Made by a program: the position numbers and the translations under genes. DNA of 64,000 nucleotides. It comes from Obrimoposthia wandeli (lineage: Eukaryota). Under the pieces are notes generated by a model. It was not told where the DNA came from. It saw only the letters and a list, made by a program, of their open reading frames with translations, and did not search any database. Where the stretch lies: NCBI GenBank assembly GCA_977020255.1, contig CDROCS010006891.1, forward strand, positions 1-64,000. Direction: 5' to 3'. Position 1 is the stretch's first letter; every line of letters starts with the position of its first letter. Below are positions 23,536 through 49,927 of this stretch, piece by piece.

Positions 23536-23823
23536 ATGATGATCCGTTCAATATTCAATAACTCAAAGGCATTATCATCTGAAGACTCAGTTATGCCGCC
23601 AGTCGCAGTTAGCAACTTATCACAAGCAAAAATCGGTGTAGGTTATATTATCACGGGAGTGATTCCTGGCGATGCTGACATTGCTAATTTCCTATTCACA
23701 CTAGGTTGCTTTCAAGGTGAAACGATCACATTGATCTCGATACTCTCTGACAGTTACGTGATTAGCATTAAAGATGCGAGATATAGCATTGGAAGTGATT
23801 TAGCTGAAGCAGTGCTTATCTAA
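23536..23823 (+). CDS. feoA: Ferrous iron transport protein A
   Basis: SH3-like FeoA pattern (FLFTLGCFQGETITL...IKDARYSIG) directly upstream of feoB. Confidence 0.85.
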   Translation: MMIRSIFNNSKALSSEDSVMPPVAVSNLSQAKIGVGYIITGVIPGDADIANFLFTLGCFQGETITLISILSDSYVISIKDARYSIGSDLAEAVLI

Positions 23824-23943
23824 CCTTATTTAAACCTTTCATATAATCAAAGCATATTAAGGCGGCAATCCATCTGTAGCGGGTTTTACGCAAATAACGT
23901 TAATGATTATTGATTTTATTATTATTATGCCAGGAAGTTTATT

Positions 23944-25947
23944 TTGAAAATTGCATTAGCTGGTAATCCTAATAGTGGAAAAACTACCTTATTCAACGCG
24001 TTAACGGGTAAAGCTGCGCATGTAGGAAACTGGGCAGGCGTCACAGTCGATAAAAAAGAAGGGCAAGTAAAGGCAAGTTTCAATAAAACCAATACAGATA
24101 TAATGGCAATTGATCTACCCGGTGCTTACTCAATGTCTCCTTTTTCATCAGAGGAGGCAATAACACGAGATTTTGTGAAAAATGAAAAACCAGATGTAAT
24201 TCTTAATATTATTGATGCAACAAACCTAAGTCGTAGTCTATTTCTCACTACACAGCTGTTAGAGCTTAATATTCCGCTTGTCATTGCACTGAACAAAAGT
24301 GATTTAACCAAAAGTAAAAACATAGTAATTGATATTAAGAAATTAAGTGAATTGCTTGGGTGTCCAATCGTTGAAACGACATCCACAAATAGCTTCAAAA
24401 ATGGTTTGTCTAATGTTATTTCTGTTGCCGTAGAGCGAGTAGGTAAACAACAAAGAGCCGCTTTTGTTAAAGGTGACGTAGCGTTAAGCGACGAAAAGTT
24501 AGTTAAAGCTTCAGGCATTAAACGTTTTAAATTTGCAAACTACATCGTAGAAAAAGTAGAACAAAAACAAGTTAAAAATAGTGCACATTCATTACAAGAT
24601 ACTGTGGATAGAGTTGTCGCAAATAAATGGCTAGGTTTACCTGTTTTTGCACTAATCATGTGGACTGTATTTTCTATATCACAAACCTACTTAGGGCCGC
24701 TTTTAGCTGATTTTTTGGTCGGTTGGATTGATGCGTTTTATGGTTTGGTTGCAGGATTATTAGGTGATGATGTTTCTCCAGTATTAGGTGCGTTATTGCT
24801 AGACGGGATAATCGGTGGTGTTGGCGCAGTAATCGGCTTTCTACCGTTGATCATGGTATTGTTTTTCTTGCTCGCATTACTTGAAGATTGTGGTTATATG
24901 GCCCGTGTTGCCGTCATTATGGATCGCTTTTTTAAACACCTTGGTTTATCTGGTAAATCAATTATCCCAATGGTTATTGGTACAGGGTGTGCTATCCCAG
25001 GCATCATGGCGACAAGAACAATACAAAACGAACGACAAAGAAGAACTACAGCGATGTTAACGCCATTTATGCCTTGCGGAGCGAAACTTCCGGTGATTGC
25101 ATTATTTGCAGGTGTTTTCTTTAATGATGCAGCATGGGTTGGAACCTCTATGTACTTCTTAGGTATTGCAATCATCACTATTGGAGCATTAATTGTGGTG
25201 CGCATTACTGGTGAAAAAAATGCACGGTCATTCTTTATTATGGAATTACCTGAGTATCGATTCCCAAGTATAAAACGTGCGATTACCTCTACTCTTTCGA
25301 GAGCAAAATCATTCATTATTAAAGCTGCTACTATTATTTTGTTATGCAATGCTGTCGTGCAAGTCATGCAAACCTTTAACTGGCAATTAGATGTTGTCGG
25401 CGAAGGTGCTGCTGGTACAAGCATTCTGGCGAGTGTTGCATCACCATTTGCATTATTGCTCGTTCCACTTGGGTTTGGTGTATGGCAATTGGCAGCGGCT
25501 GCAATCACCGGTTTTATTGCAAAAGAAAATGTGGTGGGGACATTAGCCGTTGTTTATGGCATTACTAACTTTATTGATACACAAGAGCTGACATTAATTG
25601 CGGGTGGTTCTAATGTAGCAAGCGTAATGGGATTATCTTCAGTGGCTGCATTATCGTACTTGATATTTAACCTTTTTACACCGCCATGTTTTGCGGCTTT
25701 AGGGGCAATGAACTCAGAAATGGAAGATAAAAAATGGTTATGCGGGGGAGTCGCATTCCAATTTGGCATGGGTTATGTGGTTGCATTTATTACTTACCAA
25801 GTGGGAACATTAATCACAACGGGCGCTTTTGGCCAAGGCTTTATATACGGTCTAGTGGTTGCTTTAGTATTGATAGGCACTTTGCTCTTTTTCATGTCCA
25901 AAGGTGAAGATATAGCTCAACAAAAGTTAAATACGTATAACACATAG
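23944..25947 (+). CDS. feoB: Ferrous iron transport protein B
   Basis: GNPNSGKTT, VGNWAGVT, DLPG, NKSD G-motifs; EDCGYMAR, PFMPCGAKLP, PPCFAA. Confidence 0.96.
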   Translation: MKIALAGNPNSGKTTLFNALTGKAAHVGNWAGVTVDKKEGQVKASFNKTNTDIMAIDLPGAYSMSPFSSEEAITRDFVKNEKPDVILNIIDATNLSRSLFLTTQLLELNIPLVIALNKSDLTKSKNIVIDIKKLSELLGCPIVETTSTNSFKNGLSNVISVAVERVGKQQRAAFVKGDVALSDEKLVKASGIKRFKFANYIVEKVEQKQVKNSAHSLQDTVDRVVANKWLGLPVFALIMWTVFSISQTYLGPLLADFLVGWIDAFYGLVAGLLGDDVSPVLGALLLDGIIGGVGAVIGFLPLIMVLFFLLALLEDCGYMARVAVIMDRFFKHLGLSGKSIIPMVIGTGCAIPGIMATRTIQNERQRRTTAMLTPFMPCGAKLPVIALFAGVFFNDAAWVGTSMYFLGIAIITIGALIVVRITGEKNARSFFIMELPEYRFPSIKRAITSTLSRAKSFIIKAATIILLCNAVVQVMQTFNWQLDVVGEGAAGTSILASVASPFALLLVPLGFGVWQLAAAAITGFIAKENVVGTLAVVYGITNFIDTQELTLIAGGSNVASVMGLSSVAALSYLIFNLFTPPCFAALGAMNSEMEDKKWLCGGVAFQFGMGYVVAFITYQVGTLITTGAFGQGFIYGLVVALVLIGTLLFFMSKGEDIAQQKLNTYNT

Positions 25948-33268: not shown

Positions 33269-34948
33269 TTGGCTGATTACTCGCTGATGGATACACTCAA
33301 TTGTGATCCAGATGCGAACAAAAAAGGAGCCGAACACTCACCGCGACAAGTTTTTAGTGGGCACTATGTCCCAGTCACTCCCACACCTATTCAGAATCCA
33401 GAGTACGTGGCTCACAGTAAAAGCTTTTTCCAGGAGCTTGGCTTCGCTGACAGCCTGGCACAGTCCGCTGATTTTGTGCGGATGTTTTCTGGCGATTTAG
33501 CTCAGCTACCTGCGCCGTTGCGCACCATGGGCTGGGCGAGTGGCTATGCACTTTCAATCTATGGTAATGAATATTACCAACAGTGCCCATTTGGCACTGG
33601 CAACGGTTACGGAGATGGCCGCGCTCTTTCGGTCTTTGAAGCGGTTATCAAGGGGCAGCGCTGGGAAATGCAGTTAAAAGGGGCTGGCCGCACACCTTAT
33701 TGTCGTGGTGCAGATGGCCGTGCCGTTTTGCGTTCTAGTATCCGAGAGTTTTTGGCGCAAGAACATATGCAAGCGCTGGGAGTACCTACAACTCGCTCGC
33801 TGAGTTTGTATGTTTCCAAAACGGAAAAGGTTGACAGACAGTGGTACTCAGAGGGCACGCGCTCGATGAATCCAGATAAGTATATCTCTGAGCCCGTTGC
33901 TATCTCGACACGTGTTGCACCCTCATTCATAAGGGTTGGTCAATTGGAACTCTTTGGGCGCCGTGCTCGCAAAGAAGAGCATCCCAAAGCGATGGATGAG
34001 CTTGAGATGCTGGTGTTGCACTTAATTGATCGCGAGTACGCTGACGTTATCGACAACAGGTTAGAGATTGCCGAGAAGGTACTGCTACTAGCACGGGAGT
34101 TTCGCAGCCGATTGAGTTCGCTGGTGGTGAATTGGCTTCGTGTAGGTTATTGCCAAGGTAACTTCAACAGTGATAACTGCGCCGCGGGAGGCTTTACACT
34201 CGATTACGGTCCTTTTGGTTTTTGTGAACTATTCAGCCCGCAATATCAGCCCTGGACCGGTGGTGGGTTACACTTTTCATTTTTTAACCAACCCTTGGCA
34301 GCGGAACGTAATTTCCAGATGTTTTGCAGCGCGCTAAAGCCGCTGCTTACTTCTTGTAAAGATGCCTCACATAAAGAGGCTCTGCAACAGTTAGATGAGA
34401 TTCAAGCTGGCTTTGCCCAAACTTTACAACTGCAAAAAGAAGAGATGTGGGCGAGCAAGCTGGGCCTTGACAGTTTTGATGGGGTGCTATTTAGTGAATT
34501 GGAAACACTCATGCTAGAAACGGCAGTGGACTACACTATTTTCTTTCGTGAACTCTCAAGTGTCCCTGAAGGTATTGAACCACTCAAAAAGAGTTTCTAT
34601 AGAGGACCTAGTTATAGAGCGGATCCAAATGCAATGGATCAGCGTTGGTCGAAGTGGCTCACAAAATGGAGATCGCTGATCGAGGAAAATGCTCAGCCTT
34701 ACCACAAAGAGGCTCTGTCTACGCAGATGAAGTTAGTCAACCCAAAATATAGTTGGCGGGAGTGGTTTGTGGTACCTGCCTATCAGCAAGCGAACAGCGG
34801 TAACTATGAACTAGTGCGAGAGCTACAAGAAGTATTGACGCAGCCATACGCTGAGCAGTCACAGGAGGTAGAGGATAAATACTATCGACTGAAACCGTTT
34901 GAGTTTTTTGAAGTAGGTGGTTTTTCGCATTACAGCTGTTCATCGTGA
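33269..34948 (+). CDS. selO: SelO/YdiU-family protein adenylyltransferase; start uncertain
   Basis: [49 protein letters not shown]-terminal SCSS. Confidence 0.92.
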
Positions 34949-36162: not shown

Positions 36163-36181
36163 AATGTTATATTATAACATT
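36163..36181. promoter_or_regulatory. Zur box
   Basis: Perfect 9-1-9 inverted repeat AATGTTATA-T-TATAACATT upstream of a Zn ABC operon. Confidence 0.88.
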
Positions 36182-36310
36182 ACATTTGATGTATTTAAGG
36201 ATTGATAGTTCATGTACTTTTTTTATCTTTGCATAACTAAAAGGGTGGTTATAACCATCTCTTTTTTAGTTTTACTTCTGTTTATATTATTAGAATTGGT
36301 TTAAATCGAG

Positions 36311-37006
36311 ATGATTGAATTAAATAAAGTCAGCCTAAATAGATCCGAACGGCGCTTATTAAGCCACTGTCAGCTAAGTATTAAACGCGGTGGTTTTTAT
36401 GCCTTGACGGGTGATAATGGCAGTGGCAAAAGCACATTACTCCAAGCTATTATTGGTGACTTTCCTATTGCTTCAGGACACATCGTTCGACGTTTCAAAC
36501 AAGGGGAATATTCATATCTGCCGCAAACAAAGACACTTGATATACAGTTTCCCATCAGTGTTGAACAAGCGGTTATGGCTGGGCTTTGGCTGCACTTCGG
36601 TGCTTTTAAAAATGTAAAGAACAGTCATTTTTATCAAATTGATGAGGCCTTAGAAAAGGTCGGTATTGCACACTTAAGAACATCTTCAGTAAACCAATTG
36701 TCCGGTGGTGAGCTTCAAAGAGTGCTCTTTGCAAGGATGTTGGTGCAAAAAGCACCACTATTATTGTTGGATGAGCCTTTGGCAGCGATCGATCAAAATG
36801 CACAAAATATGTTGCTAGAAATACTTAACGCAAAGCATCAACAAGGTGCAACCATCATTATTACCTTACATGATGCTGGATTAGTTAAACAATATGCAAC
36901 AGATCAATTACATATTCGCGAGCAGAAAATACACTTATGTAATGCTGCATATGAACATTCGCTTTCGTGTTGCACACTGCCATTATCTATGGTGACAGAA
37001 TGCTGA
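36311..37006 (+). CDS. Zn/Mn ABC transporter ATP-binding subunit (ZnuC/AztA type)
   Basis: GDNGSGKST, YLPQ, LSGGELQR, LLDEP. Confidence 0.9.
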   Translation: MIELNKVSLNRSERRLLSHCQLSIKRGGFYALTGDNGSGKSTLLQAIIGDFPIASGHIVRRFKQGEYSYLPQTKTLDIQFPISVEQAVMAGLWLHFGAFKNVKNSHFYQIDEALEKVGIAHLRTSSVNQLSGGELQRVLFARMLVQKAPLLLLDEPLAAIDQNAQNMLLEILNAKHQQGATIIITLHDAGLVKQYATDQLHIREQKIHLCNAAYEHSLSCCTLPLSMVTEC

Positions 37007-37881
37007 TAGATATTATTATCTCTCCTTTTGCTGAATTTGAATTCATGCAACGGGCACTTTTTGGCTGTTTTTTGTTAAGCCTTAACGGTAGTTTGATAGG
37101 TGTTTTTTTATTGCTTAAACGAATGAGTTTAAGCGGTGATGCAATGGCGCATGCTATTTTGCCCGGAGCAGCAGTAGGTTATTTTGTGGCGGGATTAAAT
37201 GTACTTGCTATGACTATCGGCGGTTTGTTCGCAGGGTTATTAGTCGCTTTTCTGTCAGGATTCACCGCAAGAAAAACTAAGAGTAATGAAGAGAGTACTT
37301 TAGCGGCTTATTATTTGTGTTCTCTTGCGTTGGGCGTATTGATTATCTCAATGAAGGGAGGCAGCGTTGACCTACTGCATGTCCTTTTTGGTTCAATTCT
37401 AGCTCTTAATAACGACACATTGTACTTATTATATTTCAATACGGTTGTATGTTTATTAGGCTTTTGCTGTTTTTATAGGCTATTAGTCATGGATTGTAGT
37501 GACAGCGAATTTTTCAAAAGCATGAGCAAGTTTGGAGGTTATAGTCATTATATATTTTTATTATTGTTAATTATTAATTTGGTGACAGGCTTTCATGCAC
37601 TAGGGACTTTGATGGCAGTGGGCATGACCGTTCTCCCTGCTGCCACAGCACGTTATTGGAGTAATCGTATTGAATTAATGGTGTTGATCTCTTTCGTTTT
37701 GGGTTTCTTCGCTTCGATTTTGGGCTTACTTTGTTCTTACTATTTGCGTATGCCTAGCAGCTCTGCAATTGTCCTATGGCTAGGTATATTCTTTTTACTC
37801 TCCGTTTTAATTGGCCAAAATGGCGGCGTGTTCCGCAAGGTTGGCTTTTACAGTAAAAATAATCTAATAAAGGAAGTTTGA
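37000..37881 (+). CDS. Zn/Mn ABC permease (ZnuB/AztB type); ATG at 37000 overlaps the upstream stop
   Basis: FMQRAL, GDAMAHAILPG, DLLHVLFGSIL, LPAATAR. Confidence 0.9.
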   Translation: MLIDIIISPFAEFEFMQRALFGCFLLSLNGSLIGVFLLLKRMSLSGDAMAHAILPGAAVGYFVAGLNVLAMTIGGLFAGLLVAFLSGFTARKTKSNEESTLAAYYLCSLALGVLIISMKGGSVDLLHVLFGSILALNNDTLYLLYFNTVVCLLGFCCFYRLLVMDCSDSEFFKSMSKFGGYSHYIFLLLLIINLVTGFHALGTLMAVGMTVLPAATARYWSNRIELMVLISFVLGFFASILGLLCSYYLRMPSSSAIVLWLGIFFLLSVLIGQNGGVFRKVGFYSKNNLIKEV

Positions 37882-38831
37882 TGAAGGTTCACAGTAAATT
37901 GATCTGTTTGATTTTATTATCGATTTTATCTCAAGTATCCATTGCGGTAGAAAAGCTCCATGTAGTGGCTAGCTTTAGTATTTTGGGGGACATTACGCAA
38001 CAATTAGGGGGAGATAGAATAGAGTTAACCACACTTGTTGGGCCCAATAAAGATAGTCATGCCTATAAACCGACGCCTTATGATGCTCAGAAACTAGCCG
38101 TTGCAGATATTCTTGTAATTAATGGACTTTCTTTCGAAGGTTGGATATCTCGTTTAGAGGAAGCTTCAGGGTTCAAAGGCAAGCGGGTTATTGCCAGTGA
38201 TGGTGCAGATATAATTACGCATGAAGAACATGAAGAACATGAAGAACATGAAGAACATGATAGCGCTCATCAAGAAGAGACGACTCAGGACGAACATGAT
38301 CATGGAGATAAAGACCCTCATGCTTGGCACAGTTTAGCGAATATTCGTATCTATGTTAGTAATATCAGTGAGGCTCTGGTAGCAGTGGATCCTAACTATC
38401 GGTCGTATTATGCAGAAAACAAGCTGCGTTACCTTACACAAATAGATGCACTACAAAAACGTTTAGACCTTAAAGTGAGTTCATTACCTGTTAGTGCACG
38501 CCAAGTTATAACATCCCATGATGCCTTTGGTTATGTCGCTAGAGAGTATGGCTTTAGTTTTTATGCTCCCATTGGCCTTAGTACACAAGCGCAAGCTTCG
38601 GCAGCAGATGTGGCAAAATTAATAAGGCAAGTGAAGCAGCATAATATAAAAGCGTTGTTCGTTGAAAATGTTTCAGATGAACGTTTAATTAAACAAATTG
38701 GTCGTGAAAGCAACGCCAAAATAGGCGGTAAACTCTATTCTGATGCGTTATCAAATCATGGTGATCAAGCTAGCACATACTTGAAAATGATGGAACATAA
38801 TATAGATACACTCGTTAATGCATTACGTTAA
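37878..38831 (+). CDS. Zn ABC substrate-binding protein (ZnuA/AztC, cluster A-I) with His-rich loop
   Basis: ASFSILGD, DSHAY, DPHAW, SHDAFGY, LYSDAL. Confidence 0.92.
   Translation: MMKVHSKLICLILLSILSQVSIAVEKLHVVASFSILGDITQQLGGDRIELTTLVGPNKDSHAYKPTPYDAQKLAVADILVINGLSFEGWISRLEEASGFKGKRVIASDGADIITHEEHEEHEEHEEHDSAHQEETTQDEHDHGDKDPHAWHSLANIRIYVSNISEALVAVDPNYRSYYAENKLRYLTQIDALQKRLDLKVSSLPVSARQVITSHDAFGYVAREYGFSFYAPIGLSTQAQASAADVAKLIRQVKQHNIKALFVENVSDERLIKQIGRESNAKIGGKLYSDALSNHGDQASTYLKMMEHNIDTLVNALR
38220..38260 (+). repeat. Coding 9-bp tandem repeat (CATGAAGAA)x4.5 encoding (HEE)n
   Basis: Read directly; forms the His/Glu-rich loop of the Zn-binding protein. Confidence 0.95.
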
Positions 38832-39468
38832 ATTACTGGTGAAAAAAGCTGTGTTGTGCACAGCTTTAATGTGCGCAACACAGCTCGCTAGTCATCCTCA
38901 CAATTGGATTGATTTATCCACTGAGTTTAGTATCAGTGACCAAGGGCTTTTGACAGGTTTTAGCCAGCAATGGCAGTTCGACCAATTTTTTTCAATGATA
39001 AGTTATGCAGACTTGATGAATGAATATAATGATGAGTCAATCGGTTTAGCGAGTACTGCTATGAAGATGGTAGCAAATGTTGGGCCCGATCAGTACCTTT
39101 CAAAATTGAAAGTGGCAGGGGTCAATGTTGCGCTACCTGTCCCTACGCTATACAGCCTTGAAACGAAAGAAGTTAATGGCATCCCGATTCTGATCTTGAA
39201 AATGAAATTCGTTTTGAAGGATCAACCTTTGGTCAAGAATAAGACGTTTACTTTGAAAACTTACGAACCTACTTTTTTTATTGCAATGAACTACCCAAGT
39301 ACTGCAAGTATTAGCATCACTGGTAATCACAATGATTGTAAAGCGCAATTAATCCAAGCCAAACCTAGTGAGGAAAGGCGCTCGTATGCAACTGGTTTGG
39401 ATAGAAATATGCGTGATACAGATGGTTTAGGTGATGACTTCGCCGAACAAATAAACGTTCAATGTTAA
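38818..39468 (+). CDS. DUF1007 family periplasmic protein (ZevA-like)
   Basis: Signal peptide followed by HPHNWID; WQFDQFFS; YEPTFF. Confidence 0.85.
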   Translation: MHYVKLLVKKAVLCTALMCATQLASHPHNWIDLSTEFSISDQGLLTGFSQQWQFDQFFSMISYADLMNEYNDESIGLASTAMKMVANVGPDQYLSKLKVAGVNVALPVPTLYSLETKEVNGIPILILKMKFVLKDQPLVKNKTFTLKTYEPTFFIAMNYPSTASISITGNHNDCKAQLIQAKPSEERRSYATGLDRNMRDTDGLGDDFAEQINVQC

Positions 39469-39477
39469 AGGTGAATT

Positions 39478-40380
39478 TTGAAGAAATATAAGCTCTATTT
39501 TCTGTTTATACTGCTAGTTAGTCTATCCTTTATATTGCTCTATGATAGTGGTACATGGAATGCGTTAGTGAATTTCATCGTCAGAACTCAGTTGCAGTTT
39601 CATAAACTGTTGAATGCGCAAATTTTGTTAATAGCACAAACACCTAATGTATATGGGTTGAGTCTCATTGGCATCAGTTTTACTTACGGAGTGTTTCATG
39701 CACTAGGGCCAGGTCATGGTAAATTAATAATAGTTAGCTATTTGGCAAGCAACCCGCAAAGCAAAAAGAATAGCTGTTTACTTGCCTTAGCGGCCGCTTT
39801 TTTACAAGCGTTATCGGCAATATTGCTAGTCACAATTTTGAGCCTAATACTAAAATATAAGTTTATACAGCTTGAAATTAGCGCAAACCAACTCAGCTTA
39901 ATAGGGTATGGTTTATTGTTATGTCTGGGTTCATTCATAGCGATGAGGAGCATAATAGGCCTACGTAAGTTTACAGCGGGGAATATTGGATGCAGTAGTT
40001 GTTGTAGTAACGTAAAAGTTGATACGAAAGCAAAGAGTGTCTATCAACTTTTTTTGATCGCGCTCGCTATCGGTATTAGACCTTGTTCCGGTGCACTGAT
40101 CATATTAGTGACTTCTTCAATGTTAGGTATTTATAATTACGGGATATTGGGCACCTTAGCTATGGGTTTGGGTACCGCCGTGTGTACTTGTGTCATTGCA
40201 CTGGCAAGTTTGTATGCCCGAAATTTTCTCAATCAACTGGTTACAGTCTACACCAAAGGTCATGAACAAAAACCTTACGCCATGTATATCCAGTTCGTGG
40301 GTAGCGTTGTAATTATTTGCTTAGCACTGTCCTTAATCAATGCTAATAATCTATTGATCAATCCATTATTGACTCGCTAG
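39478..40380 (+). CDS. NicO/RcnA-family metal transporter (ZevB-like)
   Basis: SFTYGVFHALGPGHGK, GIRPCSGA, AMGLGTA. Confidence 0.88.
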   Translation: MKKYKLYFLFILLVSLSFILLYDSGTWNALVNFIVRTQLQFHKLLNAQILLIAQTPNVYGLSLIGISFTYGVFHALGPGHGKLIIVSYLASNPQSKKNSCLLALAAAFLQALSAILLVTILSLILKYKFIQLEISANQLSLIGYGLLLCLGSFIAMRSIIGLRKFTAGNIGCSSCCSNVKVDTKAKSVYQLFLIALAIGIRPCSGALIILVTSSMLGIYNYGILGTLAMGLGTAVCTCVIALASLYARNFLNQLVTVYTKGHEQKPYAMYIQFVGSVVIICLALSLINANNLLINPLLTR

Positions 40381-40457
40381 AAGGGCGGTCATCGCTTAAA
40401 AAAATGCAATTGGAGTTGTTTGAAGCACATGGATGTTAGGCAGCCAACAAGAAATAA

Positions 40458-40476
40458 AATGTTATGTTATATCGTA
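40458..40476. promoter_or_regulatory. Probable Zur box upstream of the Zn-free ribosomal paralogues
   Basis: AATGTTATG-T-TATATCGTA, a degenerate copy of the 36163 box. Confidence 0.6.
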
Positions 40477-40530
40477 TTAAAAATTTAGAACTATTTTGTT
40501 TATAAAACTAAGCTTGAGGATGAGCGCAAT

Positions 40531-40785
40531 ATGAAAAAAAATATTCACCCTGTATCTCGTGAAGTTGTCTTTCATGATACGAATGTCGATAAGAAAATGA
40601 TTATTAAGTCGACCCTAAAAACCAATAGAACCATTCTTTTAGATGGTAAGGAGTACCCGTATATGTCGTTAGATGTGTCATCATTTTCGCATCCGTTTTA
40701 TACCGGTAAACAGATGGTGTCAAGCAGCGAAGGGCGCGTAGCAAACTTTAATCGTAAATTTTCTAATTTTAAAGGGACATCATAG
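40531..40785 (+). CDS. rpmE2: 50S ribosomal protein L31 type B (Zn-independent)
   Basis: MKKNIHP...VVFHD...[14 protein letters not shown]...[10 protein letters not shown]; no CxxC. Confidence 0.95.
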
Positions 40786-40910
40786 TGAAAGTGCTCAGTT
40801 CTTTGAAAAGCGCTAAAAAAAGGCACAAAGATTGCAAGATTGTAAAGCGTAGAGGGCGCACATTTGTTATTTGCAAGTCAAACCCAAGGTTTAAAGCAGT
40901 ACAAAAATAA
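40785..40910 (+). CDS. rpmJ2: 50S ribosomal protein L36 type B (YkgO); missing from the ORF track
   Basis: GTG overlapping the rpmE2 TAG: [41 protein letters not shown] (41 aa). Confidence 0.93.
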
Positions 40911-41109
40911 ACAAGGGAGTACAGATAACTCAAAATAGCTCACTGCTCTAAGCTGTCGTTAGAAAAGCAGGGCAGGTGAGCATAAATGTAGCTGGTCGCG
41001 CAAAGCGAATCAGTGATATTTTAATATTCGTTTATATAATAAATTCAACGGCTTATTTGATGAACCAATGAAGCCGTTAATCGCTAGAATAGTGTTCTAT
41101 ATTGTCAAC

Positions 41110-41310
41110 TAGGCTCTGTTGAAAAGTATATTGCTTGTACCAAAGAAATTGTTGAAAAATAGAGCATCAGCTAGGCAGCTATTTTGGTACTTATTTTGGT
41201 ATCTCTTTTGTATCAAAGACTTAATTTCTTTATCGAATGTAATATTAAAAGTTTGTGGCACTATAGTTCACTACCTATTTTCTAGATTCAATCATATCAA
41301 CAGAAGGCCT
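41110..41310. mobile_element. ~200-bp MITE-like element with imperfect terminal inverted repeats
   Basis: Left TAGGCTCTGTTGA; right end reverse-complement AGGCCTTCTGTTGA; AT-rich interior with no transposase-like ORF. Confidence 0.5.
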
Positions 41311-41316
41311 CGATAA

Positions 41317-42354
41317 ATGGCGTTAAATGTTAATGAGCAGTTACCCACAAATATTATTACAGGTTTTTTAGGTGTCGGTAAAACCACAGCTATTATGCAT
41401 TTGCTCGCTCACAAGCCTACAGGTGAGCGATGGGCAGTACTTGTCAATGAGTTTGGTGAAGTTGGGATAGACGGAAAATTTTATTCCAGAGATCATCAAG
41501 AACAAACAGGGGTGTATATAACAGAGGTTGCTGGCGGTTGTATGTGTTGCACGGCGGGCTTATCAATGCAGATTTCCCTAAATATGTTGCTGGCGCGCGC
41601 TAAACCGGATCGCTTGTTTATTGAGCCTACAGGTCTTGGCCATCCTAAAGAAATATTAGCGGCACTCTCGGCCGGTTACTACACTAAGGCATTAGAGTTG
41701 CGTGCTACGATCACTCTAGTTGATGCAAGAAAAATAAGAGACGTGCGTTATACTGGCCATGACATATTTAATCAACAACTGGAAATAGCCGATATTATTG
41801 TGGCTAATAAAGCAGATGCCTATGAAGAGTCTGATTTACCAGAGCTATTTAAATATTTGTCTGCAAAGCAGTTGTTGGTAGATAAACACTTTTATTCAAC
41901 AATCTATGGGAAAATAGCGCCTGAGTGGTTGAACGAAAAGTCATCAGTGGAGCTTGAGACTAATGTGATCCAAAAAACAACTGACATATCAATAGAGGAA
42001 GATGAAAATGCTGTGAGCATACCTGAATGTGGTTACTTAAAAATTGAAAATAAAGGCGAGGGCTTTAACAGTAGCGGTTGGTTATTTCTGCCCAGTTATG
42101 TGTTTGATAAAGAGAAGCTGTTCCAAGTGTTGCATAGTATTAATGCTGAACGATTAAAGGCTATATTTTCTACTAGTCAAGGGGTGTGCGGTTACAACAA
42201 AGCCGATGGTATACTCACAGAGGTGTTATTAGACGGAGTAGCTGATAATCGCATAGAAATTATATTTAGCAGTAATGAGCAGTTTGAAGAATTACCTTTG
42301 CACATTACTCAGTGCTGCGTAAACCAGACGACTAAAGCGGGCTTAAAAACATAG
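41317..42354 (+). CDS. COG0523/CobW-family G3E GTPase (Zn metallochaperone, YeiR-like)
   Basis: ITGFLGVGKTT, VNEFGEVGID, GGCMCC, IEPTGLGHP, NKAD. Confidence 0.93.
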   Translation: MALNVNEQLPTNIITGFLGVGKTTAIMHLLAHKPTGERWAVLVNEFGEVGIDGKFYSRDHQEQTGVYITEVAGGCMCCTAGLSMQISLNMLLARAKPDRLFIEPTGLGHPKEILAALSAGYYTKALELRATITLVDARKIRDVRYTGHDIFNQQLEIADIIVANKADAYEESDLPELFKYLSAKQLLVDKHFYSTIYGKIAPEWLNEKSSVELETNVIQKTTDISIEEDENAVSIPECGYLKIENKGEGFNSSGWLFLPSYVFDKEKLFQVLHSINAERLKAIFSTSQGVCGYNKADGILTEVLLDGVADNRIEIIFSSNEQFEELPLHITQCCVNQTTKAGLKT

Positions 42355-42371: not shown

Positions 42372-42399
42372 TATTACCTGTTTAATAAAACAGGTAATA
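42372..42399. terminator. Bidirectional terminator at the convergence point of the Zn island
   Basis: TATTACCTGTTT-AATA-AAACAGGTAATA, perfect 12-bp stem. Confidence 0.7.
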
Positions 42400-42436: not shown

Positions 42437-43345
42437 TCAACGCTTTTTTATTGGTGTTAATTTTCGTAATGACCATAATTGGCTACCTTCAAAAAACACA
42501 GCGAGTGCCGCTAAAATAATAAACAAAGATGACAAATAAAAGTGCCATTGCGGAATTACCTGGAAAAAAGCGAAATCAAGAATGACAGCAAAACCTAGCA
42601 TTAAATACTCAAACGTCGCTAGTTTTGATGCTTCAGAGTATTGAAAACTCAAAGTCATCATTATATGTGCAACCCCTCCTGCAAGGCCTGAACTTACTAA
42701 TAGCACAAGCTGGTATGGGCTAGGGTTAATCCAACCCAAAGGTATAGTTAACAAGCCTGCTATAGTGCAGATGAGGGCAAAGTAGAAAGCTATAGCCCCC
42801 GCATTTTCTGTTTTCGCTAAATGGCGAATTTGAATTTTAGCGAGTGCTGTGCAGAAAGCCATAATTAAACCTAAACAGACACCGAGCAAATAATCGCTGC
42901 TTAGCTCTAAGCTATTGAGTTGTGGCCCAATCAACACCAGCATGCCAATGAAACCAAAGATTACGCCAAACCAGCGCGCATTGGTCACTACTTCAGATAG
43001 AAAAAGACGAGCCAGCAACACAGTCATAATGGGTGCCAAGAAGCCAATGACAGTGGCATCTGCCATAGGTAAATACTGCAATGATGCGAATGATGCAAAC
43101 ATGGCAACGCAGCCAAAAAGGCAGCGGCTTAAGTGTCCAATGGGCCTTTTGGTTTTTAAACCGCAAGGAAATTCACGGCTTATGATTAAAAATACAATCA
43201 ATGGAATGAGTGCAATAGCGCTGCGATAGAAGACAATTTGCCCGAGAGGCACTGCAGCTGCGAGTAACTTGATAAATAAAACCATAATCGCGAAAAACAA
43301 TGTCGCGCCAATGCGTAAATTTATACCCTTTAGATCTGCGGTCAT
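42437..43345 (-). CDS. EamA/DMT transporter (10 TM)
   Basis: GQIVFYRS, LPMADATVIGFLAP, AIAFYF, EASKLATFEYL. Confidence 0.88.
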   Translation of the reverse strand: MTADLKGINLRIGATLFFAIMVLFIKLLAAAVPLGQIVFYRSAIALIPLIVFLIISREFPCGLKTKRPIGHLSRCLFGCVAMFASFASLQYLPMADATVIGFLAPIMTVLLARLFLSEVVTNARWFGVIFGFIGMLVLIGPQLNSLELSSDYLLGVCLGLIMAFCTALAKIQIRHLAKTENAGAIAFYFALICTIAGLLTIPLGWINPSPYQLVLLVSSGLAGGVAHIMMTLSFQYSEASKLATFEYLMLGFAVILDFAFFQVIPQWHFYLSSLFIILAALAVFFEGSQLWSLRKLTPIKKR

Positions 43346-43517
43346 TTATAGCCTATGTGATTGAGTTTGTGTGAATTAACTGCTTAGCATAAAACAGAAG
43401 TAGTTATTATGCTTACGCGAAGTGTTTCCTTTAGGCTAGTAATTATTGTGCAAACAATTGATAAGTACTCAATTGGCAGGCACATAAACTAATGATGTAT
43501 TTGTCAATCTGAGTCAC

Positions 43518-44480
43518 TTATAAATTCGCAGAACTATTATCTGGTTGTTGTAATTTATCGTGTACATAATCTCCATAAATGTTAATAATCAATACGGTGA
43601 TAAGAATGGCTAATCCTGGGAAGATCATGATATGTGGTGCCGTTTGAAAATAGGCTTTACCATCGAGTAGCATCGCTCCCCATTCTGCATTGGGGGGTTG
43701 AACGCCAAAACCTAGAAAGCTCAACCCCGATATAGCTAAAATTGTTCGCGACCAGCTATTCGTCCATAACACGAATACCTGTAAGCGCAGATTAGGTAGA
43801 ATATGACGCCACAAAATGTACCATATGGGCAGTCTATTTAAGCGCGCTTGCACGATGAAGTCTTCTTGGCTGATTTCTAATGTCAGGCTGCGTACTAAAC
43901 GGCAGTATTTCATCCAGCTGAGCAAGGTAAGAGCCAGCACCATGTTAGTGGTACTGGCCCCTAACAAACCAGAAATTGCCACAGCAGCAACCAACTCAGG
44001 AAAAGCAAAAAAACTATCGGTTATACGCATCATCCACTGATCGATAAAGCGTGTTGGGATCAACGTTTTCAAGTTGCCTGGTACACTGCGGCTATATTGC
44101 GCTAAAAACCCACATGTTAAGCCGATCACTATGCCAATAACGGCGCCGCTGCTAGCAATTAAGAATGCTAAACCTACCGACCAGAGTGCTCCATATGAAA
44201 TACGTGTAGCAATATCTCTGCCTAAATGATCAGTGCCAAACCAATGCAAGAGACTTGGTGTGGCTAAACGATCAGTAAAATCAGTTTGGTTAGGGCCGAA
44301 AGGTGTTAACCAAAAAGATAATAAATACAGTGTAGTAAGAATGAAAATTAATGTTGCACATAATATGTTTGGTTTCAGGAAGTATGAATCTCTTGAATGG
44401 ATGTTTAGATCTTTACTGGCAGTTAAAGTCGTTTTAAAATTCGATCTATAAAACTTGCTTAATGTGCTTGTCACTGACAT
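43518..44480 (-). CDS. Opp/Nik ABC permease (C subunit)
   Basis: HWFGTDHLGRDI, MRITDSFFAFP, HILPN, LSFLGFGVQPPNAEWGAML. Confidence 0.92.
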   Translation of the reverse strand: MSVTSTLSKFYRSNFKTTLTASKDLNIHSRDSYFLKPNILCATLIFILTTLYLLSFWLTPFGPNQTDFTDRLATPSLLHWFGTDHLGRDIATRISYGALWSVGLAFLIASSGAVIGIVIGLTCGFLAQYSRSVPGNLKTLIPTRFIDQWMMRITDSFFAFPELVAAVAISGLLGASTTNMVLALTLLSWMKYCRLVRSLTLEISQEDFIVQARLNRLPIWYILWRHILPNLRLQVFVLWTNSWSRTILAISGLSFLGFGVQPPNAEWGAMLLDGKAYFQTAPHIMIFPGLAILITVLIINIYGDYVHDKLQQPDNSSANL

Positions 44481-44488
44481 ATAATTAA

Positions 44489-45469
44489 TTACCCTTTAAC
44501 GCGCGCTGGCTGATATCTTGGATCTAGGTATTGCTGACTAAGTTCAAGGAGCATATTAATGCTTAAATAACAGAACGCGGAAAACATCACTAAGAATAAT
44601 ATGACCGGATAGTCACGGCTCATAACCGAAGACACCAATAAAGAGCCGATACCTGATCGTGCAAAAATAATTTCCACAATCACTGCGCCTTCCATTAAAA
44701 AAGCGAGCTCTAAAGCGATCATTGTCATTGCGGGTAACAGTGCATGACGAAGTATATGGCGAGTGAATATTTCCACTTCGCCTACACCTCGCAATCTGAG
44801 ATTTTCAATAAAGGGTGCAGCCATAGCCTTGAAGAAAAAGCTACGTAGCAAGCGTGTTTGTGATGCACATACCCAAACGGATAAGGTAAAACTAGGTAAG
44901 ATTAAATGCTGCCAAGTACCAGAGCCATAGGCGGGTAAAATATTTAGGGTGGCAGCAAAAATTAAGATCAATATTAAACCAAGCCAATAAGAGGGTATGG
45001 CTGCACCCACGCAAGAAAGGCTAATAACTAACCTATCAAGCCAGCTCCCTTGATTGTAAAGACTGATTAAGCTAAACAGAAGTGCCAGGCATAAACCTAA
45101 GCCCAATGCAGCTAAGGTAAGTGACAGCGTATCGTGTATATTCGCCAGAAAAATGCCCAACACTTGGTCACCAGAGACAAAAGATAGACCAAAGTCACCT
45201 TGTATTATTTGCCCAAGCCAATGGCTAAATTGCCAGAAAAAAGATTGATCTAAATGGAACTCATAGGTTATTTGATTAATGACCGCCTCAGGTATACCGC
45301 TTTCATCCGCATAGCGGGCTCTGGCAATAGCCATCGCTTTATCTCCTGGTGCTAAATAGTACAAACCAAAAGTGAGTAAACTGACCTTGGATAGCACCAG
45401 CAAAAAAACACCGATAGTTTTGAGGGTTTGGAACAAAAACCGATTATTTATGATCACTTTGCTATCCAT
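44489..45469 (-). CDS. Opp/Nik ABC permease (B subunit)
   Basis: GDFGLSF, IPSYWLG, RHILRHAL, VEIIFARSGIG, RDYPVI. Confidence 0.92.
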   Translation of the reverse strand: MDSKVIINNRFLFQTLKTIGVFLLVLSKVSLLTFGLYYLAPGDKAMAIARARYADESGIPEAVINQITYEFHLDQSFFWQFSHWLGQIIQGDFGLSFVSGDQVLGIFLANIHDTLSLTLAALGLGLCLALLFSLISLYNQGSWLDRLVISLSCVGAAIPSYWLGLILILIFAATLNILPAYGSGTWQHLILPSFTLSVWVCASQTRLLRSFFFKAMAAPFIENLRLRGVGEVEIFTRHILRHALLPAMTMIALELAFLMEGAVIVEIIFARSGIGSLLVSSVMSRDYPVILFLVMFSAFCYLSINMLLELSQQYLDPRYQPARVKG

Positions 45470-46364
45470 TAGTCCCCGATTTCGCTATTAATTGATGAGT
45501 TGATGCTAACCAGTCACTATTTTCTTTAGCTGCATTAGCAGCGCCCAAGTTGTGTATCTTATTTACTTGAGCAGGTATGACGCTAGGAACCTTCTGGTCG
45601 CCGCGCGTCGCTAGCGCTCCTAAAGTAGTTGATGCATGAATTAACGCAGCTGCATATTCACTGTCAGGAGAGGTAAAGAATTGCGCTGCGCTCTGGTAGG
45701 ATTGGACACTACCCTCTCGTAATAGCAGTACATCATCAGCGTAGGCACTTGCATAACCTAAATCGTGAGTAACAACGATGTAACTCAGTTGATGCCGGCT
45801 CTTGATATGATGCATTGTATGGGCGACTTGCTTTTGAATTATGGCATCCAATGAAGTTAGCGGTTCGTCAAAAAGAATAATCGCCGGGCGTGAAATTAAC
45901 GCACGTGCTAGGCAAACTCTTTGTGCTTGGCCTATGGAGAGCTGGTGAGGGTAACGAGTAGCAATATCCATAGACAACTTAACCTCGTCTAACACACTTA
46001 TCAGTCGGATTTTTAGTTGTTCTTTAGTCATCTTTTCATGATAAATACTTTCCACAATAGCAGGGCCAACTTGCTGCTTAGGGTTTAACGCCGCTAATGG
46101 ATTTTGCATTACCCACTGGGCTCCCTTTAAACCATGCCAGTTATTACCCACTTGATAGATTGTCGTGTGGTTGGTTGCGTTTCGAAATTTTATCTTTCCT
46201 GATTGCATAGGGATTAGCCCTTGTAAGGCTTTCATCAAGGTTGACTTACCGGCGCCGCTTTCACCGATAATGCACAGTGTTTTTCCTTTTGCTAGAGAGA
46301 AATTAATCTTGTGCAAAAGATATTGCCCGCCAATACTGATCGATAAATCTTCAACCGTCAGCAT
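45462..46364 (-). CDS. Opp/Nik ABC ATP-binding subunit
   Basis: GESGAGKST, YPHQLSIGQAQR, FDEPLTSLD. Confidence 0.9.
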   Translation of the reverse strand: MLTVEDLSISIGGQYLLHKINFSLAKGKTLCIIGESGAGKSTLMKALQGLIPMQSGKIKFRNATNHTTIYQVGNNWHGLKGAQWVMQNPLAALNPKQQVGPAIVESIYHEKMTKEQLKIRLISVLDEVKLSMDIATRYPHQLSIGQAQRVCLARALISRPAIILFDEPLTSLDAIIQKQVAHTMHHIKSRHQLSYIVVTHDLGYASAYADDVLLLREGSVQSYQSAAQFFTSPDSEYAAALIHASTTLGALATRGDQKVPSVIPAQVNKIHNLGAANAAKENSDWLASTHQLIAKSGTNG

Positions 46365-47166
46365 GAGTATTCTCCTTATGCCAATAGCGCTGCTCGATCA
46401 AGTGCTTTGCATACAGTGACTTAGGAGCGTCTAACACAGATTGGCTCGGCCCGGCTTCGACAATCTCACCTTTGTCTAATATAGCTATCTGTTGTGAAAA
46501 GTTGGCGGCCATCGACAAATTATGCGTTACCATTAGCACGCTGATATTATTCACTTTGGCATATCTCATAACTTCTGTGATTACTTGTGCACCAACGAGT
46601 GGATCCAGTGCTGAGGTGGGTTCATCAAGTATTAAAACTTGAGGTTTGCTCAATAGAGCAAAGGCCAATAGTAACCTTTGCTGCATACCTAAGCTCCATT
46701 GGTGTGGATAGTCCACAGCGAAATCTTTAAGTGAAAATGCTGTCAATATAGCTGCAGTTTCTATTGCGTTACGATCATTGTTTTGTGCACAGCGCTGCGC
46801 TTGACGCCACTGCCACGCGAGTTTCTTTAGTGGATCTAATCCATATTTTGGGTTTTGCGGGACATAAGAAAAACACGTGTGTGTGTTAATCGCACTCTTT
46901 ACCCTAGAGAAATCAAATATCTTATCAATGATTCTCAATTGACCTGTTATAGGCACGATAGGTTGACGAAAGCCCATTAAACACCGCAGTACTGTTGATT
47001 TTCCCGCACCTGATCCACCCACTAGGGCAACGGATTCTCCTCGAGCAATATGCAAATCTACATTGTTTAGAATTCGCTTAGAGCCGATAGTCGCGGTTAA
47101 TCCTGTTAATTGAAGCAAGAGGGTTCCCCTTAGTCGTTGAGCAAAGAGTAGCTTAGAGCTGCTCAC
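46351..47166 (-). CDS. Opp/Nik ABC ATP-binding subunit
   Basis: GGSGAGKST, YPHQWSLGMQQR, LDEPTSALD. Confidence 0.9.
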   Translation of the reverse strand: MSSSKLLFAQRLRGTLLLQLTGLTATIGSKRILNNVDLHIARGESVALVGGSGAGKSTVLRCLMGFRQPIVPITGQLRIIDKIFDFSRVKSAINTHTCFSYVPQNPKYGLDPLKKLAWQWRQAQRCAQNNDRNAIETAAILTAFSLKDFAVDYPHQWSLGMQQRLLLAFALLSKPQVLILDEPTSALDPLVGAQVITEVMRYAKVNNISVLMVTHNLSMAANFSQQIAILDKGEIVEAGPSQSVLDAPKSLYAKHLIEQRYWHKENTHADG

Positions 47167-47180
47167 AAAATGTTGCTTTT

Positions 47181-48740
47181 TTATTCAAGATCTAAATCGA
47201 TTGTCGCCATGTAAGTTTCAGCAGGATGAATACGATAGCCTGTAACTTTTCCATTACCGACAGATAACTGGTTTTTGTGGAACAGTGGAATAATAGGTAA
47301 TTCTTGATTGATAATCTGCTGTACTTGATCGTAGTAGGTTTTGCGTTTGTTATCGTCAAATTCCGCTCGACCTTTGCTCAATAAAGCATCTAAAACTGGG
47401 TTGCTGTAACCTGAAAAATTGGCATTTGCATTAGTGCGTAACAATGTATTAGGGAAATAATCAGGATCACCTTGTGGCGCGGTTCCCCATGCTTGCAAAT
47501 GCATTTGGATTTCGCCACTTTTCAATGCACTACTATTAGCTTCGTATTCTCCGATTGAAATATCGGCTTTGATGCCAATTTTTCCTAACATTGCTTGCGT
47601 TATTTCTAAAGTAGGGCGAAGTGCAGCACGCCCCTCATATGAGCGAAGTTTAATGACAATGTCTTTACCGGCAATTTCGCGTACGCCATTGCCGTCAGTA
47701 TCTTTGATGCCTTGCGCATCTAAGAGGGATTTCGCTTGTTCAGCGTTATATGGCAATGTTGCCGTATTATCTAGCCATGCGTGCATATTACTAGCAAAGA
47801 TACTATTGGCAGCAGTACCACCAACACCTGCCAAGGCAGCATCTACTAGAAGCTGACGATTTAAACCTAGTGAAATAGCTTGACGTAGAGTCTGATTCTT
47901 TAAGGTTCCATCAGCAGTACGAACTTGATAGAAAAATAATCGTGTGGTGGCGTTACTGAAAAGCTGCCCTTTATTATTTTTTAGCAGTTCAGCAAAATCT
48001 GGTTCGGGATAGTTTGTCACCAAATCAACATTATTTGCCTGCAACGCAAGTACTGCAACTGATGGATCAGATATAGTATCTAACTGTATACCTTTGAGTT
48101 TGGCTTTGCCCTGCCAGTAATCATTAAATCGCTTGGTAGTGTAATGTTTGTTCACTTGTGCAGAAACAAAGACAAAAGGACCTGTCGCTATAATTGGTAG
48201 TGTTTTTGTCCCAGGTTTGATGACGGCAGCCGAAGGTTCCGTCAATGACCACAAAAACGCCGCATTTGGTTGTAGGGTGTTAAATATCAGTGTGTAATCA
48301 TCAATAATTTGGATCTGCTCTATATCCAGTAGTGCAGTTAAACGTGGATTGTAGGCGGTACTGCCTTTATCGCTAAGCAAATTAAAAGAAGCTTTTACAT
48401 CAGCAGCTTTCATCGGGCTTCCATCATGAAAAAGAACATCTTGACGTAACTTTATTTGCCATTTTCTAGGCCCTATATTTACAAAACTACTAGCTAAGCG
48501 TGGCGTTTTTTGCATTTTTTCATTTAAGCCCACTAGAGTTTCTGATACTCCTGCTCGATTACTTAGCCAACCATTTTGACGGGTGCGCGGATCAGGTATT
48601 GTGCTGTTAGGGCCAAATGGAACTGCGATACGTATTATTTTATCATCGGCATGAGTTTGTATGCTGGTTGCTGTGAGTAAACATAACGAGAGAGTAACGC
48701 TTGCTGTACGGATATAGGTGTTTCTTAGGCTTTTTAGCAT
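47181..48740 (-). CDS. Family-5 substrate-binding protein (NikA/CntA-like metal-chelate binder)
   Basis: Sec signal, GVSETLV, LRQDVLFHDGSPMKAADV, ATGPF, RFNDYWQGK, QELPIIPL. Confidence 0.88.
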   Translation of the reverse strand: MLKSLRNTYIRTASVTLSLCLLTATSIQTHADDKIIRIAVPFGPNSTIPDPRTRQNGWLSNRAGVSETLVGLNEKMQKTPRLASSFVNIGPRKWQIKLRQDVLFHDGSPMKAADVKASFNLLSDKGSTAYNPRLTALLDIEQIQIIDDYTLIFNTLQPNAAFLWSLTEPSAAVIKPGTKTLPIIATGPFVFVSAQVNKHYTTKRFNDYWQGKAKLKGIQLDTISDPSVAVLALQANNVDLVTNYPEPDFAELLKNNKGQLFSNATTRLFFYQVRTADGTLKNQTLRQAISLGLNRQLLVDAALAGVGGTAANSIFASNMHAWLDNTATLPYNAEQAKSLLDAQGIKDTDGNGVREIAGKDIVIKLRSYEGRAALRPTLEITQAMLGKIGIKADISIGEYEANSSALKSGEIQMHLQAWGTAPQGDPDYFPNTLLRTNANANFSGYSNPVLDALLSKGRAEFDDNKRKTYYDQVQQIINQELPIIPLFHKNQLSVGNGKVTGYRIHPAETYMATIDLDLE

Positions 48741-48789
48741 AAAAGTTCCTCTAAATTATCAAATGAATTATGCGCGGTAATATAAATTA

Positions 48790-48808
48790 AATGTTATAAC
48801 ATAACAAT
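48790..48808. promoter_or_regulatory. Zur box upstream of the Opp/Nik operon
   Basis: AATGTTATA-A-CATAACAAT, 50 bp upstream of the SBP start; two mismatches to the perfect palindrome. Confidence 0.75.
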
Positions 48809-49132
48809 AAAAAATTGGTATACATTAAAACTCATAACGAATTTATGTTTTACTAATCTAAATCCCGGCTTTGATTCTGTGGTGTAAAGATTGCAAAAAT
48901 GAATACATATAAGAATAGAAATTGCATTTTAGTTCTTCGCCCTAAGTAGTATGAAAGAGAGGTGATTTTAATCTTAAGAAACTCACAGGGTGCTTGTTGT
49001 GTAACATTAGAGTGCAGGAACGGCAACTTAACCAATTAATTAACGAGGTAGTAAACATCAATTTCTATCCGTGCTAAAAAATATCAGTGCTCTGCACCGT
49101 TCTCAAAGTTTAGAACTAATATCAGTTTTTAT

Positions 49133-49927
49133 GGTTGTATCGCAAAGTTTAAAAATAGGAAACCGTACTATTCTATAAGCACAATTATGTGCGAGTTCTA
49201 AAAATTGTTGGCTAGTAGATGTTTTATTACTTGGGAACTGCTTCTTTCTAATCATGTAAGCAAATTCAATACCAGCGAGTGCTACATTGGCGGAATGAAA
49301 GGCTTTAAAATTCATCATTAGTTTTATTGTTTTATTGTTTTCTTGATGAAAATGCGGTTTTGCTCGATGATATTATTCAAATATTTTACTTGTAGTATAT
49401 CTACCCAGCTGGAGAGCCGAAGAAAAATAACATCATATTGATGTTCATTAAACTCGCATAATCGGCACCTCTTTTATCAATGACAATTTTTACAGGCCGT
49501 TATTATCAATAGACTGCTTGAAAAACCTTGTACATGCTGTTTCGTCACAGTTCTTGGATAGCATTACACCTAAATTAGCACCACATTTGTCAACGGCTCG
49601 AAAGTAATAACACCATATACCTTTAACTTTGATATAAGTTCATCAATTCGCGATCAAGGATAAGTTACTTTTGTTTGTGCTTTGCTATTTCTGTGATAAA
49701 GGGTGTGTATTTCACGGCCCATCGATTGAGGTCGCGTGATCAACTATTAATGGCTCGTTCCAGTATTATTCTTTTAGAGCATGATAAGCAACGTTATAAC
49801 TGACGTAGAAGTCCACATAAAGGATAATCTCTTTTGGATAATGGGTACCTTTAAAACTGATCATTTATGATATACACCAAGAAAATGAGATATTATCGAG
49901 TAATCAAGTTAACTTTGTGAAACAACT
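49133..49927 (-). mobile_element. Degenerate full-length IS6-family element (795 bp)
   Basis: TIRs GGTTGTATCGCAAAGTT and AGTTGTTTCACAAAGTT (14/17); transposase relic MISFKGTHYPKEIILY (ATG 49864) ... FKAFHSANVALAGIEFAYMIRKKQF with stops and frameshifts. Confidence 0.85.

Follow-up and report, generated by a model that had tools for sequence, protein, structure and literature searches.

A conserved Zur-boxed cassette of a Nik-type importer and an EamA protein as a probable route of chelated zinc uptake in marine bacteria

A stretch of 64,000 nucleotides (contig CDROCS010006891.1 of assembly GCA_977020255.1, filed under Obrimoposthia wandeli, positions 1 to 64,000; this whole stretch is referred to here as the window) carries six co-oriented open reading frames (ORFs) on its minus strand at 42437–48810. 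These encode, in order of reading, a periplasmic binding protein, two ATP-binding cassette (ABC) ATPases, two permeases and a transporter of the EamA/drug-metabolite transporter (DMT) family, and are preceded by a box for the regulator Zur. Identical gene content and order, EamA included, was found in 55 of 61 genome loci. The cassette is probably a means, so far undescribed, of acquiring chelated zinc. We favour, with moderate confidence, a Zur-repressed unit through which zinc, or a metal standing in for it, would enter the cell as a small chelate whose ligand the EamA protein would supply or recycle. The parts of the cassette are as follows.

48788–48810 (approximate), minus strand: Zur box, a 23-bp palindrome with the core GTTATGTTATAAC at 48793–48805 (from the sequence, exact core match)
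47181–48740, minus strand: SBP_bac_5 (cluster C) periplasmic binding protein, 519 amino acids, with a Sec-type signal peptide (Pfam, 246 bits)
46351–47166, minus strand: ABC ATPase 1, 271 amino acids, short form (Pfam ABC_tran only)
45462–46364, minus strand: ABC ATPase 2, 300 amino acids (Pfam ABC_tran)
44489–45469, minus strand: permease 1, 326 amino acids, NikB-like (Pfam BPD_transp_1 and BPD_transp_1_N)
43518–44480, minus strand: permease 2, 320 amino acids, NikC-like (Pfam BPD_transp_1)
42437–43345, minus strand: EamA/DMT transporter, 302 amino acids (Pfam EamA in two stretches, both repeats)
42373–42398, no strand: AT-rich 9-bp inverted repeat between the convergent ends of a COG0523 gene and the EamA gene (by eye)

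An earlier note on this DNA, made from the sequence alone, had described the order of binding protein, ATPase, ATPase, permease and permease with a trailing co-oriented EamA gene. All six ORFs stand where that note placed them, and the Pfam matches agree. The gap between permease 2 and the EamA gene is 172 bp in the window, and neither a terminator-like site nor a Zur box was found within it. The inverted repeat at the far end of the EamA gene is possibly a two-way terminator; it was not among the sites called by the terminator scan. Neither the Rfam nor the tRNA scan gave a match in the window.

A word search showed a well-defined family around the binding protein, and the relatives were scanned with one genome per species, giving the 61 genome loci, in which the binding proteins show 43–67% identity. 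The EamA gene, which the earlier note had counted as part of the unit, is the sixth gene of the cassette and follows permease 2 in the 55 loci mentioned above, with 43–69% identity at the protein level. The gap between the two genes is usually at most 50 bp in Alphaproteobacteria, and the pairwise identities of the binding protein and of EamA across the loci are correlated (r = 0.91). The carriers are mostly marine Alphaproteobacteria, namely Kiloniella, Roseibium/Labrenzia and many Roseobacteraceae and Paracoccaceae, with two of the loci (L004 and L022) belonging to Oceanospirillaceae. The closest binding proteins (74–81% identical) are encoded on three metagenome contigs, which carry the same six genes within unrelated flanks. 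All ORFs of the 10-kb flanks were also clustered across the 61 loci. Leaving aside the cassette genes and the shadow ORFs antisense to them, no family recurs in more than nine of these, which argues that no biosynthetic partner travels with the cassette.

A tree was rooted on a deep alphaproteobacterial branch (43–45% identity), in which the cassette lies behind other zinc-starvation genes on the same strand. In this tree, Kiloniella, Cohaesibacter and Curvivirga surround the window clade and the sequences of the two Oceanospirillaceae, which is consistent with passage of the cassette from Alphaproteobacteria to Gammaproteobacteria. Immediately upstream of it, at approximately 49200–49900 of the window, a broken minus-strand frame has the appearance, by eye, of an IS6-family transposase remnant. 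The remnant and the tree together fit acquisition of the cassette by transfer, and in the favoured explanation it is a self-contained and horizontally mobile unit. It should also be noted that the EamA frame is short in two loci, with 187 amino acids in Motiliproteus sp. MSK22-1 (L022) and 172 amino acids in a Roseibium metagenome-assembled genome (MAG; L023), which could be due to gene decay or assembly error.

Upstream of the binding protein gene of the window, a promoter-like site was found with a −35 region of TTGTTA (48807–48802) and a −10 region of TATATT (48784–48779) separated by a 17-nt spacer, and the Zur box covers the −35 region and the spacer of this candidate promoter. With at most one mismatch allowed, the Zur pattern has nine matches in the window against 2.4 expected, a number reached by none of 100 shuffles. 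Among the 61 loci, 49 have a strict Zur-type palindrome no more than 250 bp upstream of the binding protein gene, the background being 0.007–0.015 per kb in 1.15 Mb of flanking DNA. Looser boxes were found in four further Roseibium-type loci, and in L056 and L059 the box is located at the true gene start. In an Inquilinaceae MAG (L058, 7373–15550) a perfect Zur box heads a single co-oriented run of a FUR-family gene (probably zur), COG0523, DUF1826, binding protein, ATPase, ATPase, permease, permease and EamA genes, while in L054 the COG0523 and DUF1826 genes lie directly upstream of the cassette on the same strand. Counting strict boxes, looser boxes and upstream zur/COG0523-DUF1826 genes together, approximately 58 of the 61 loci are tied to zinc starvation, though this is not a strict count, since L061 is assumed to have the upstream context of L054, which it resembles. 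Strict boxes also occur elsewhere in the loci, and five of these seven precede a COG0523, GTP cyclohydrolase I (twice), FUR-family or ZrgA-family gene, so that the motif is the Zur operator in those genomes too. Judged by the operator site and its conservation, the cassette is predicted to be under Zur-dependent control, as had been proposed from the window: the box overlaps a promoter and is kept upstream of orthologues in two bacterial classes. A possible common upstream ORF (approximately 343 amino acids, no Pfam match) in L054 and the window was also considered and was rejected, the two ORFs being unrelated.

The type of importer was examined with NCBIfam models, for which all scores of the cassette components lie below the cut-offs. 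The best model for the binding protein was Opp5A_nikA (the Staphylococcus aureus NikA type, NF045468), with 241 bits against a cut-off of 600, followed in order by Opp4A, the Escherichia coli-type NikA (TIGR02294, 153 bits against 393), GsiB and DppA. The CntA model (NF047575) gave 94.7 bits against a cut-off of 800, and the CntA chains 5yh5 and 5yhe in the PDB match at an E-value of approximately 1e-18. The binding protein had been called NikA/CntA-like in the earlier note; the first half of this name is in keeping with the best model, whereas the likeness to CntA is weak. ATPase 1 was matched best by NikD (148 bits against 319), and ATPase 2 matched the GsiA, CntD/F and NikD/E models, each under its cut-off. 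For permease 1 the best model was the Opp2B nickel permease (281 bits against 350), and for permease 2 the best were Opp2C (258 bits against 300) and nikC (246 against 358).

The binding protein family was also aligned with E. coli NikA and DppA, the mapping of residues being approximate at 23–26% identity. The aspartate of DppA that binds the peptide N-terminus (D436, precursor numbering) aligns to an invariant proline (P422), as it does in NikA, and Pfam found the oligopeptide-type C-terminal domain in neither ATPase. With nickel-type models scoring best and both of these peptide-type features missing, the proposal of a Nik/Cnt-like rather than a peptide importer was upheld. The lid segment matching Tyr22–Met27 of NikA is an invariant loop rich in arginine, tryptophan and asparagine (DPR-x-RQNGW-x-SNRAG). 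S. aureus NikA, which binds a metal-(His)2 complex without bonding to the metal itself, is a plausible model for the binding protein of the cassette. The most economical reading is that the latter would likewise hold a small anionic metal complex, via arginine and aromatic side chains. Assignment of the ligand by fold was attempted with an AlphaFold2 model (predicted local distance difference test score of 81) and was abandoned, with nickel, peptide and glutathione binders about equally close and the solved relatives in the PDB approximately 25% identical at best. The binding protein is the founding member of a distinct clade, and neither this clade nor that of the cassette EamA proteins has a characterised member.

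The cassette thus shares with E. coli NikABCDE and with S. aureus NikA (Opp5A)/NikBCDE (Opp2) the best models for the binding protein, the permeases and ATPase 1, as well as the short ATPases and the lack of the peptide-anchoring aspartate. It differs from them in scoring well below the equivalog cut-offs, in having a Zur box in place of NikR control and in the attached EamA gene. The ATPase genes also precede those for the permeases, unlike in the E. coli order of nikA-B-C-D-E.

Among 44 orthologues of the cassette EamA protein, 121 positions are at least 95% conserved. Most of the charged positions (R41, H71, R74, E118, R124, R174 and E180) are common to the wider subfamily, while C75, C79, H227, K170, K241 and D257 set the cassette clade apart. 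Of the latter, C75, C79 and H227 are invariant in the 44 orthologues, and the same positions in 121 related EamA proteins are occupied mostly by Gly/Ser/Ala, Val/Ala/Thr and Gln, respectively. The hydrophobicity profile shows many hydrophobic segments over the whole length of the protein, and the clade-specific residues fall within these segments. Going by the solved DMT fold, the helices bearing these residues may line the central cavity. The two cysteines and the histidine may form a soft-ligand site in the transport path. The nearest relatives outside the cassette are 35–46% identical. A CntI-like context for the protein was sought among these with a profile search and three context look-ups, which returned only generic settings (an EamA triplet, a hydantoinase and rplS/aroF-tyrA) and hence no clue to the substrate.

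Known opine metallophore systems, namely those for staphylopine (CntABCDF/KLM/E), pseudopaline (CntOLMI) and yersinopine (CntPQRLMI), have a number of features in common with the cassette. They are under Zur control, as is predicted for the cassette, with an expected role in zinc-limited growth; the staphylopine type likewise has a PepT/Nik-family ABC importer, and the pseudopaline and yersinopine types have a partner of the EamA/DMT family, their CntI. A survey of opine zincophore clusters described two main types, one with a racemase, a major facilitator superfamily exporter and an Opp-type importer, and the other with an EamA exporter and a FecCD-type importer (PMC7438024). The cassette combines transport parts of both types without the synthase. 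In the window, 33 ORFs were scanned with Pfam (the six cassette genes and 27 more, among them all remaining listed ORFs of 200–570 amino acids), and none matched nicotianamine synthase (CntL, PF03059) or Staph_opine_DH (CntM, PF10100). This agrees with the earlier note, which had reported both genes to be absent from the window and no metallophore synthase beside the cassette; neither did any synthase adjoin it in the 61 loci or the three metagenome contigs. In contrast to the Cnt systems, no CntL, CntM or CntK adjoins the cassette in the 61 loci, its binding protein is no equivalent of CntA, its genes run in the order of binding protein, ATPase, ATPase, permease and permease, no outer-membrane receptor gene is included, and its carriers are mostly marine Alphaproteobacteria.

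It could be argued that the cassette provides the transporters of an ordinary Cnt-type system, with cntL and cntM located elsewhere in the genome, since known Cnt clusters join Opp-type importers or EamA exporters to CntL/CntM under Zur, and a few surveyed clusters join an Opp-type importer and an EamA gene (PMC7438024). This is unlikely. CntM genes nearly always share a locus with their own transporters (PMC7438024), whereas the loci and contigs studied here have neither a synthase nor a recurrent neighbour, and the score against the CntA model is far below its cut-off. In addition, the terms "Alphaproteobacteria" and "Rhodobacter" are both absent from the main text of that survey, and none of six carrier genera searched for is named in the short supplementary files examined. 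Literature searches for a Zur-controlled Opp/Nik and EamA system without a synthase found no description of one.

The favoured explanation may be set out in steps. When zinc drops, Zur would leave the box overlapping the promoter and the operon would be transcribed. The binding protein would then capture zinc in the periplasm as a complex with a small chelator, and not a free peptide, and pass this complex to the Nik-type importer with its two permeases and two ATPases. For the EamA protein two roles may be considered: it may export a small metabolite made by the cell that binds zinc outside, or it may send the emptied ligand back out once zinc has been freed in the cytoplasm. In either case the ligand would be produced by no enzyme linked to the cassette. 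Given a chelated substrate, it is about as likely that an endogenous metabolite is shuttled as that ambient or foreign chelates are taken up. A more specific version, in which the EamA protein, with its cassette-specific Cys75, Cys79 and His227, releases an ordinary metabolite of the amino acid or thiol type and the Nik-like importer retrieves its zinc complex, is put forward only tentatively. If true, it would be a zincophore strategy without dedicated biosynthesis in marine Alphaproteobacteria and, by transfer, in some Oceanospirillaceae.

Several observations weigh against the uptake of a chelate with the help of the EamA protein. EamA proteins can work as importers as well as exporters, and the 172-bp gap means that co-transcription of the EamA gene with permease 2 is not certain in the window. 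In a Foldseek search with the binding protein, S. aureus NikA, GsiB, AppA, DppA and E. coli NikA come out nearly level. The nickel-site residues of E. coli NikA, namely Arg97, Arg137 and His416 (mature numbering; His416 also appears in the title of PDB entry 3qim), are not kept, the family having T/P/S opposite the first and gaps opposite the other two. The family alignment also has no HH pair that would correspond to the double-histidine prong of NikZ. Finally, the absence of an adjoining synthase was established for the loci and contigs, the whole genomes being unscanned.

Direct capture of free Zn2+ by the binding protein, in the way that NikZ takes nickel, with a separate task for the EamA protein, was also considered and is improbable. 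Some cluster C binding proteins do bind metal without a chelator, and a double-histidine prong near the C-terminus defines the direct nickel binders of the NikZ type (bioRxiv 10.1101/2022.10.03.510666). The family has three invariant histidines (H105, H488 and H505), which would suit such a role. However, it has neither the prong nor a His-rich loop, H105 belongs to an FHDG motif found throughout the fold, and peptide binders too have histidines at the positions of H488 and H505. NikZ was not retrieved when the last 80 residues were used as a query, and the position of H505 was again a histidine in a peptide binder. Direct binding would also leave the tight co-inheritance of the EamA gene without explanation.

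There is a similarly small chance that the cargo is a nutrient other than a metal, or is what a zinc-dependent pathway makes, and that its import serves zinc sparing. Zur regulons do contain zinc-sparing genes, GTP cyclohydrolase I genes stand behind Zur boxes in these very loci, and the closest folds to the binding protein include glutathione and peptide binders. Against this, the aspartate that anchors peptides is absent, nickel-type models come closest to the binding protein, both permeases and ATPase 1, and the cassette of the deep branch is fused into zur-COG0523 operons.

That the cargo is cobalt or nickel, replacing zinc in enzymes during zinc starvation, is very unlikely: the transporter is of the nickel/cobalt type, and Pseudomonas aeruginosa is reported to have Zur-controlled operons for cobalt uptake and export, with cobalt rescuing zinc starvation (PMC13083405), but neither a NikR gene nor a NikR box is present, the sole cobalamin riboswitches found (L059) precede an unrelated Rieske oxygenase gene, and opine systems are of broad spectrum in any case. 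These riboswitches, two in number and pointing apart, lie at 59–643 of L059. The one on the plus strand precedes genes for a Rieske ring-hydroxylating oxygenase and a reductase, which is an unusual target for a B12 riboswitch. Their involvement in control of the cassette was considered and rejected on account of this position.

The cassette is one arm of a zinc-starvation island, the rest of which lies at 36163–42354 of the window. The other features of this island are as follows.

36311–40380, plus strand: znuC-znuB-znuA operon extended by DUF1007 and NicO-like membrane genes (Pfam)
40531–40785, plus strand: cysteine-less L31 paralogue (Pfam and sequence)
40785–40910, plus strand: L36 paralogue with a GTG start, overlapping the stop codon of the L31 paralogue by one base (Pfam and sequence)
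41317–42354, plus strand: COG0523 GTPase gene (Pfam)

A perfect Zur box, GTTATATTATAAC, is located at 36166–36178 ahead of the znuCBA operon, and a further box at 40461 precedes the L31/L36 pair. Both are classic Zur targets and serve as internal positive controls for the Zur boxes of the window. The COG0523 GTPase gene is preceded by a gap of 406 bp in which there is no strict Zur box, and its product gave no CobW_C match. With such ZnuABC/COG0523 loci the cassette shares its predicted regulator and, in the window, its island, and in the deep branch it follows zur-COG0523-DUF1826 genes. It differs from ZnuABC in being a cluster C (PepT) transporter rather than one of cluster A (ZnuA), and this implies a chelated substrate instead of the free ion.

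Organic ligands of unknown identity bind most of the zinc dissolved in seawater, and zinc uptake from such ligands by marine heterotrophs is poorly understood. The cassette occurs in abundant marine groups, among them Roseobacteraceae, Stappiaceae and Kiloniellaceae. With its predicted Zur control, its conservation and its apparent mobility, and with a chelate-type importer and an exporter-type protein but no synthase, it presents a concrete and testable candidate for the uptake of organic zinc in the sea. Several of the carriers, such as Roseibium, Phaeobacter, Leisingera and Kiloniella, are culturable, which makes ligand fishing and genetics feasible.

With regard to the origin of the contig, the SelO protein of the window (33269–34948) is 88% identical to that of an Oceanospirillaceae MAG and 82% identical to that of Aliamphritea hakodatensis, so that the contig is Oceanospirillaceae-like. 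Elsewhere in the window, an AT-rich palindrome, GTTATATTATCAC, lies upstream of feoB (23944–25947) within the region 23642–25947 and is a better candidate for a Fur site than for a Zur site. A protein with a cupin-type dimethylsulfoniopropionate lyase domain (PF16867) is encoded at 16502–17107, with genes for a LysR regulator and an aldehyde dehydrogenase adjoining.

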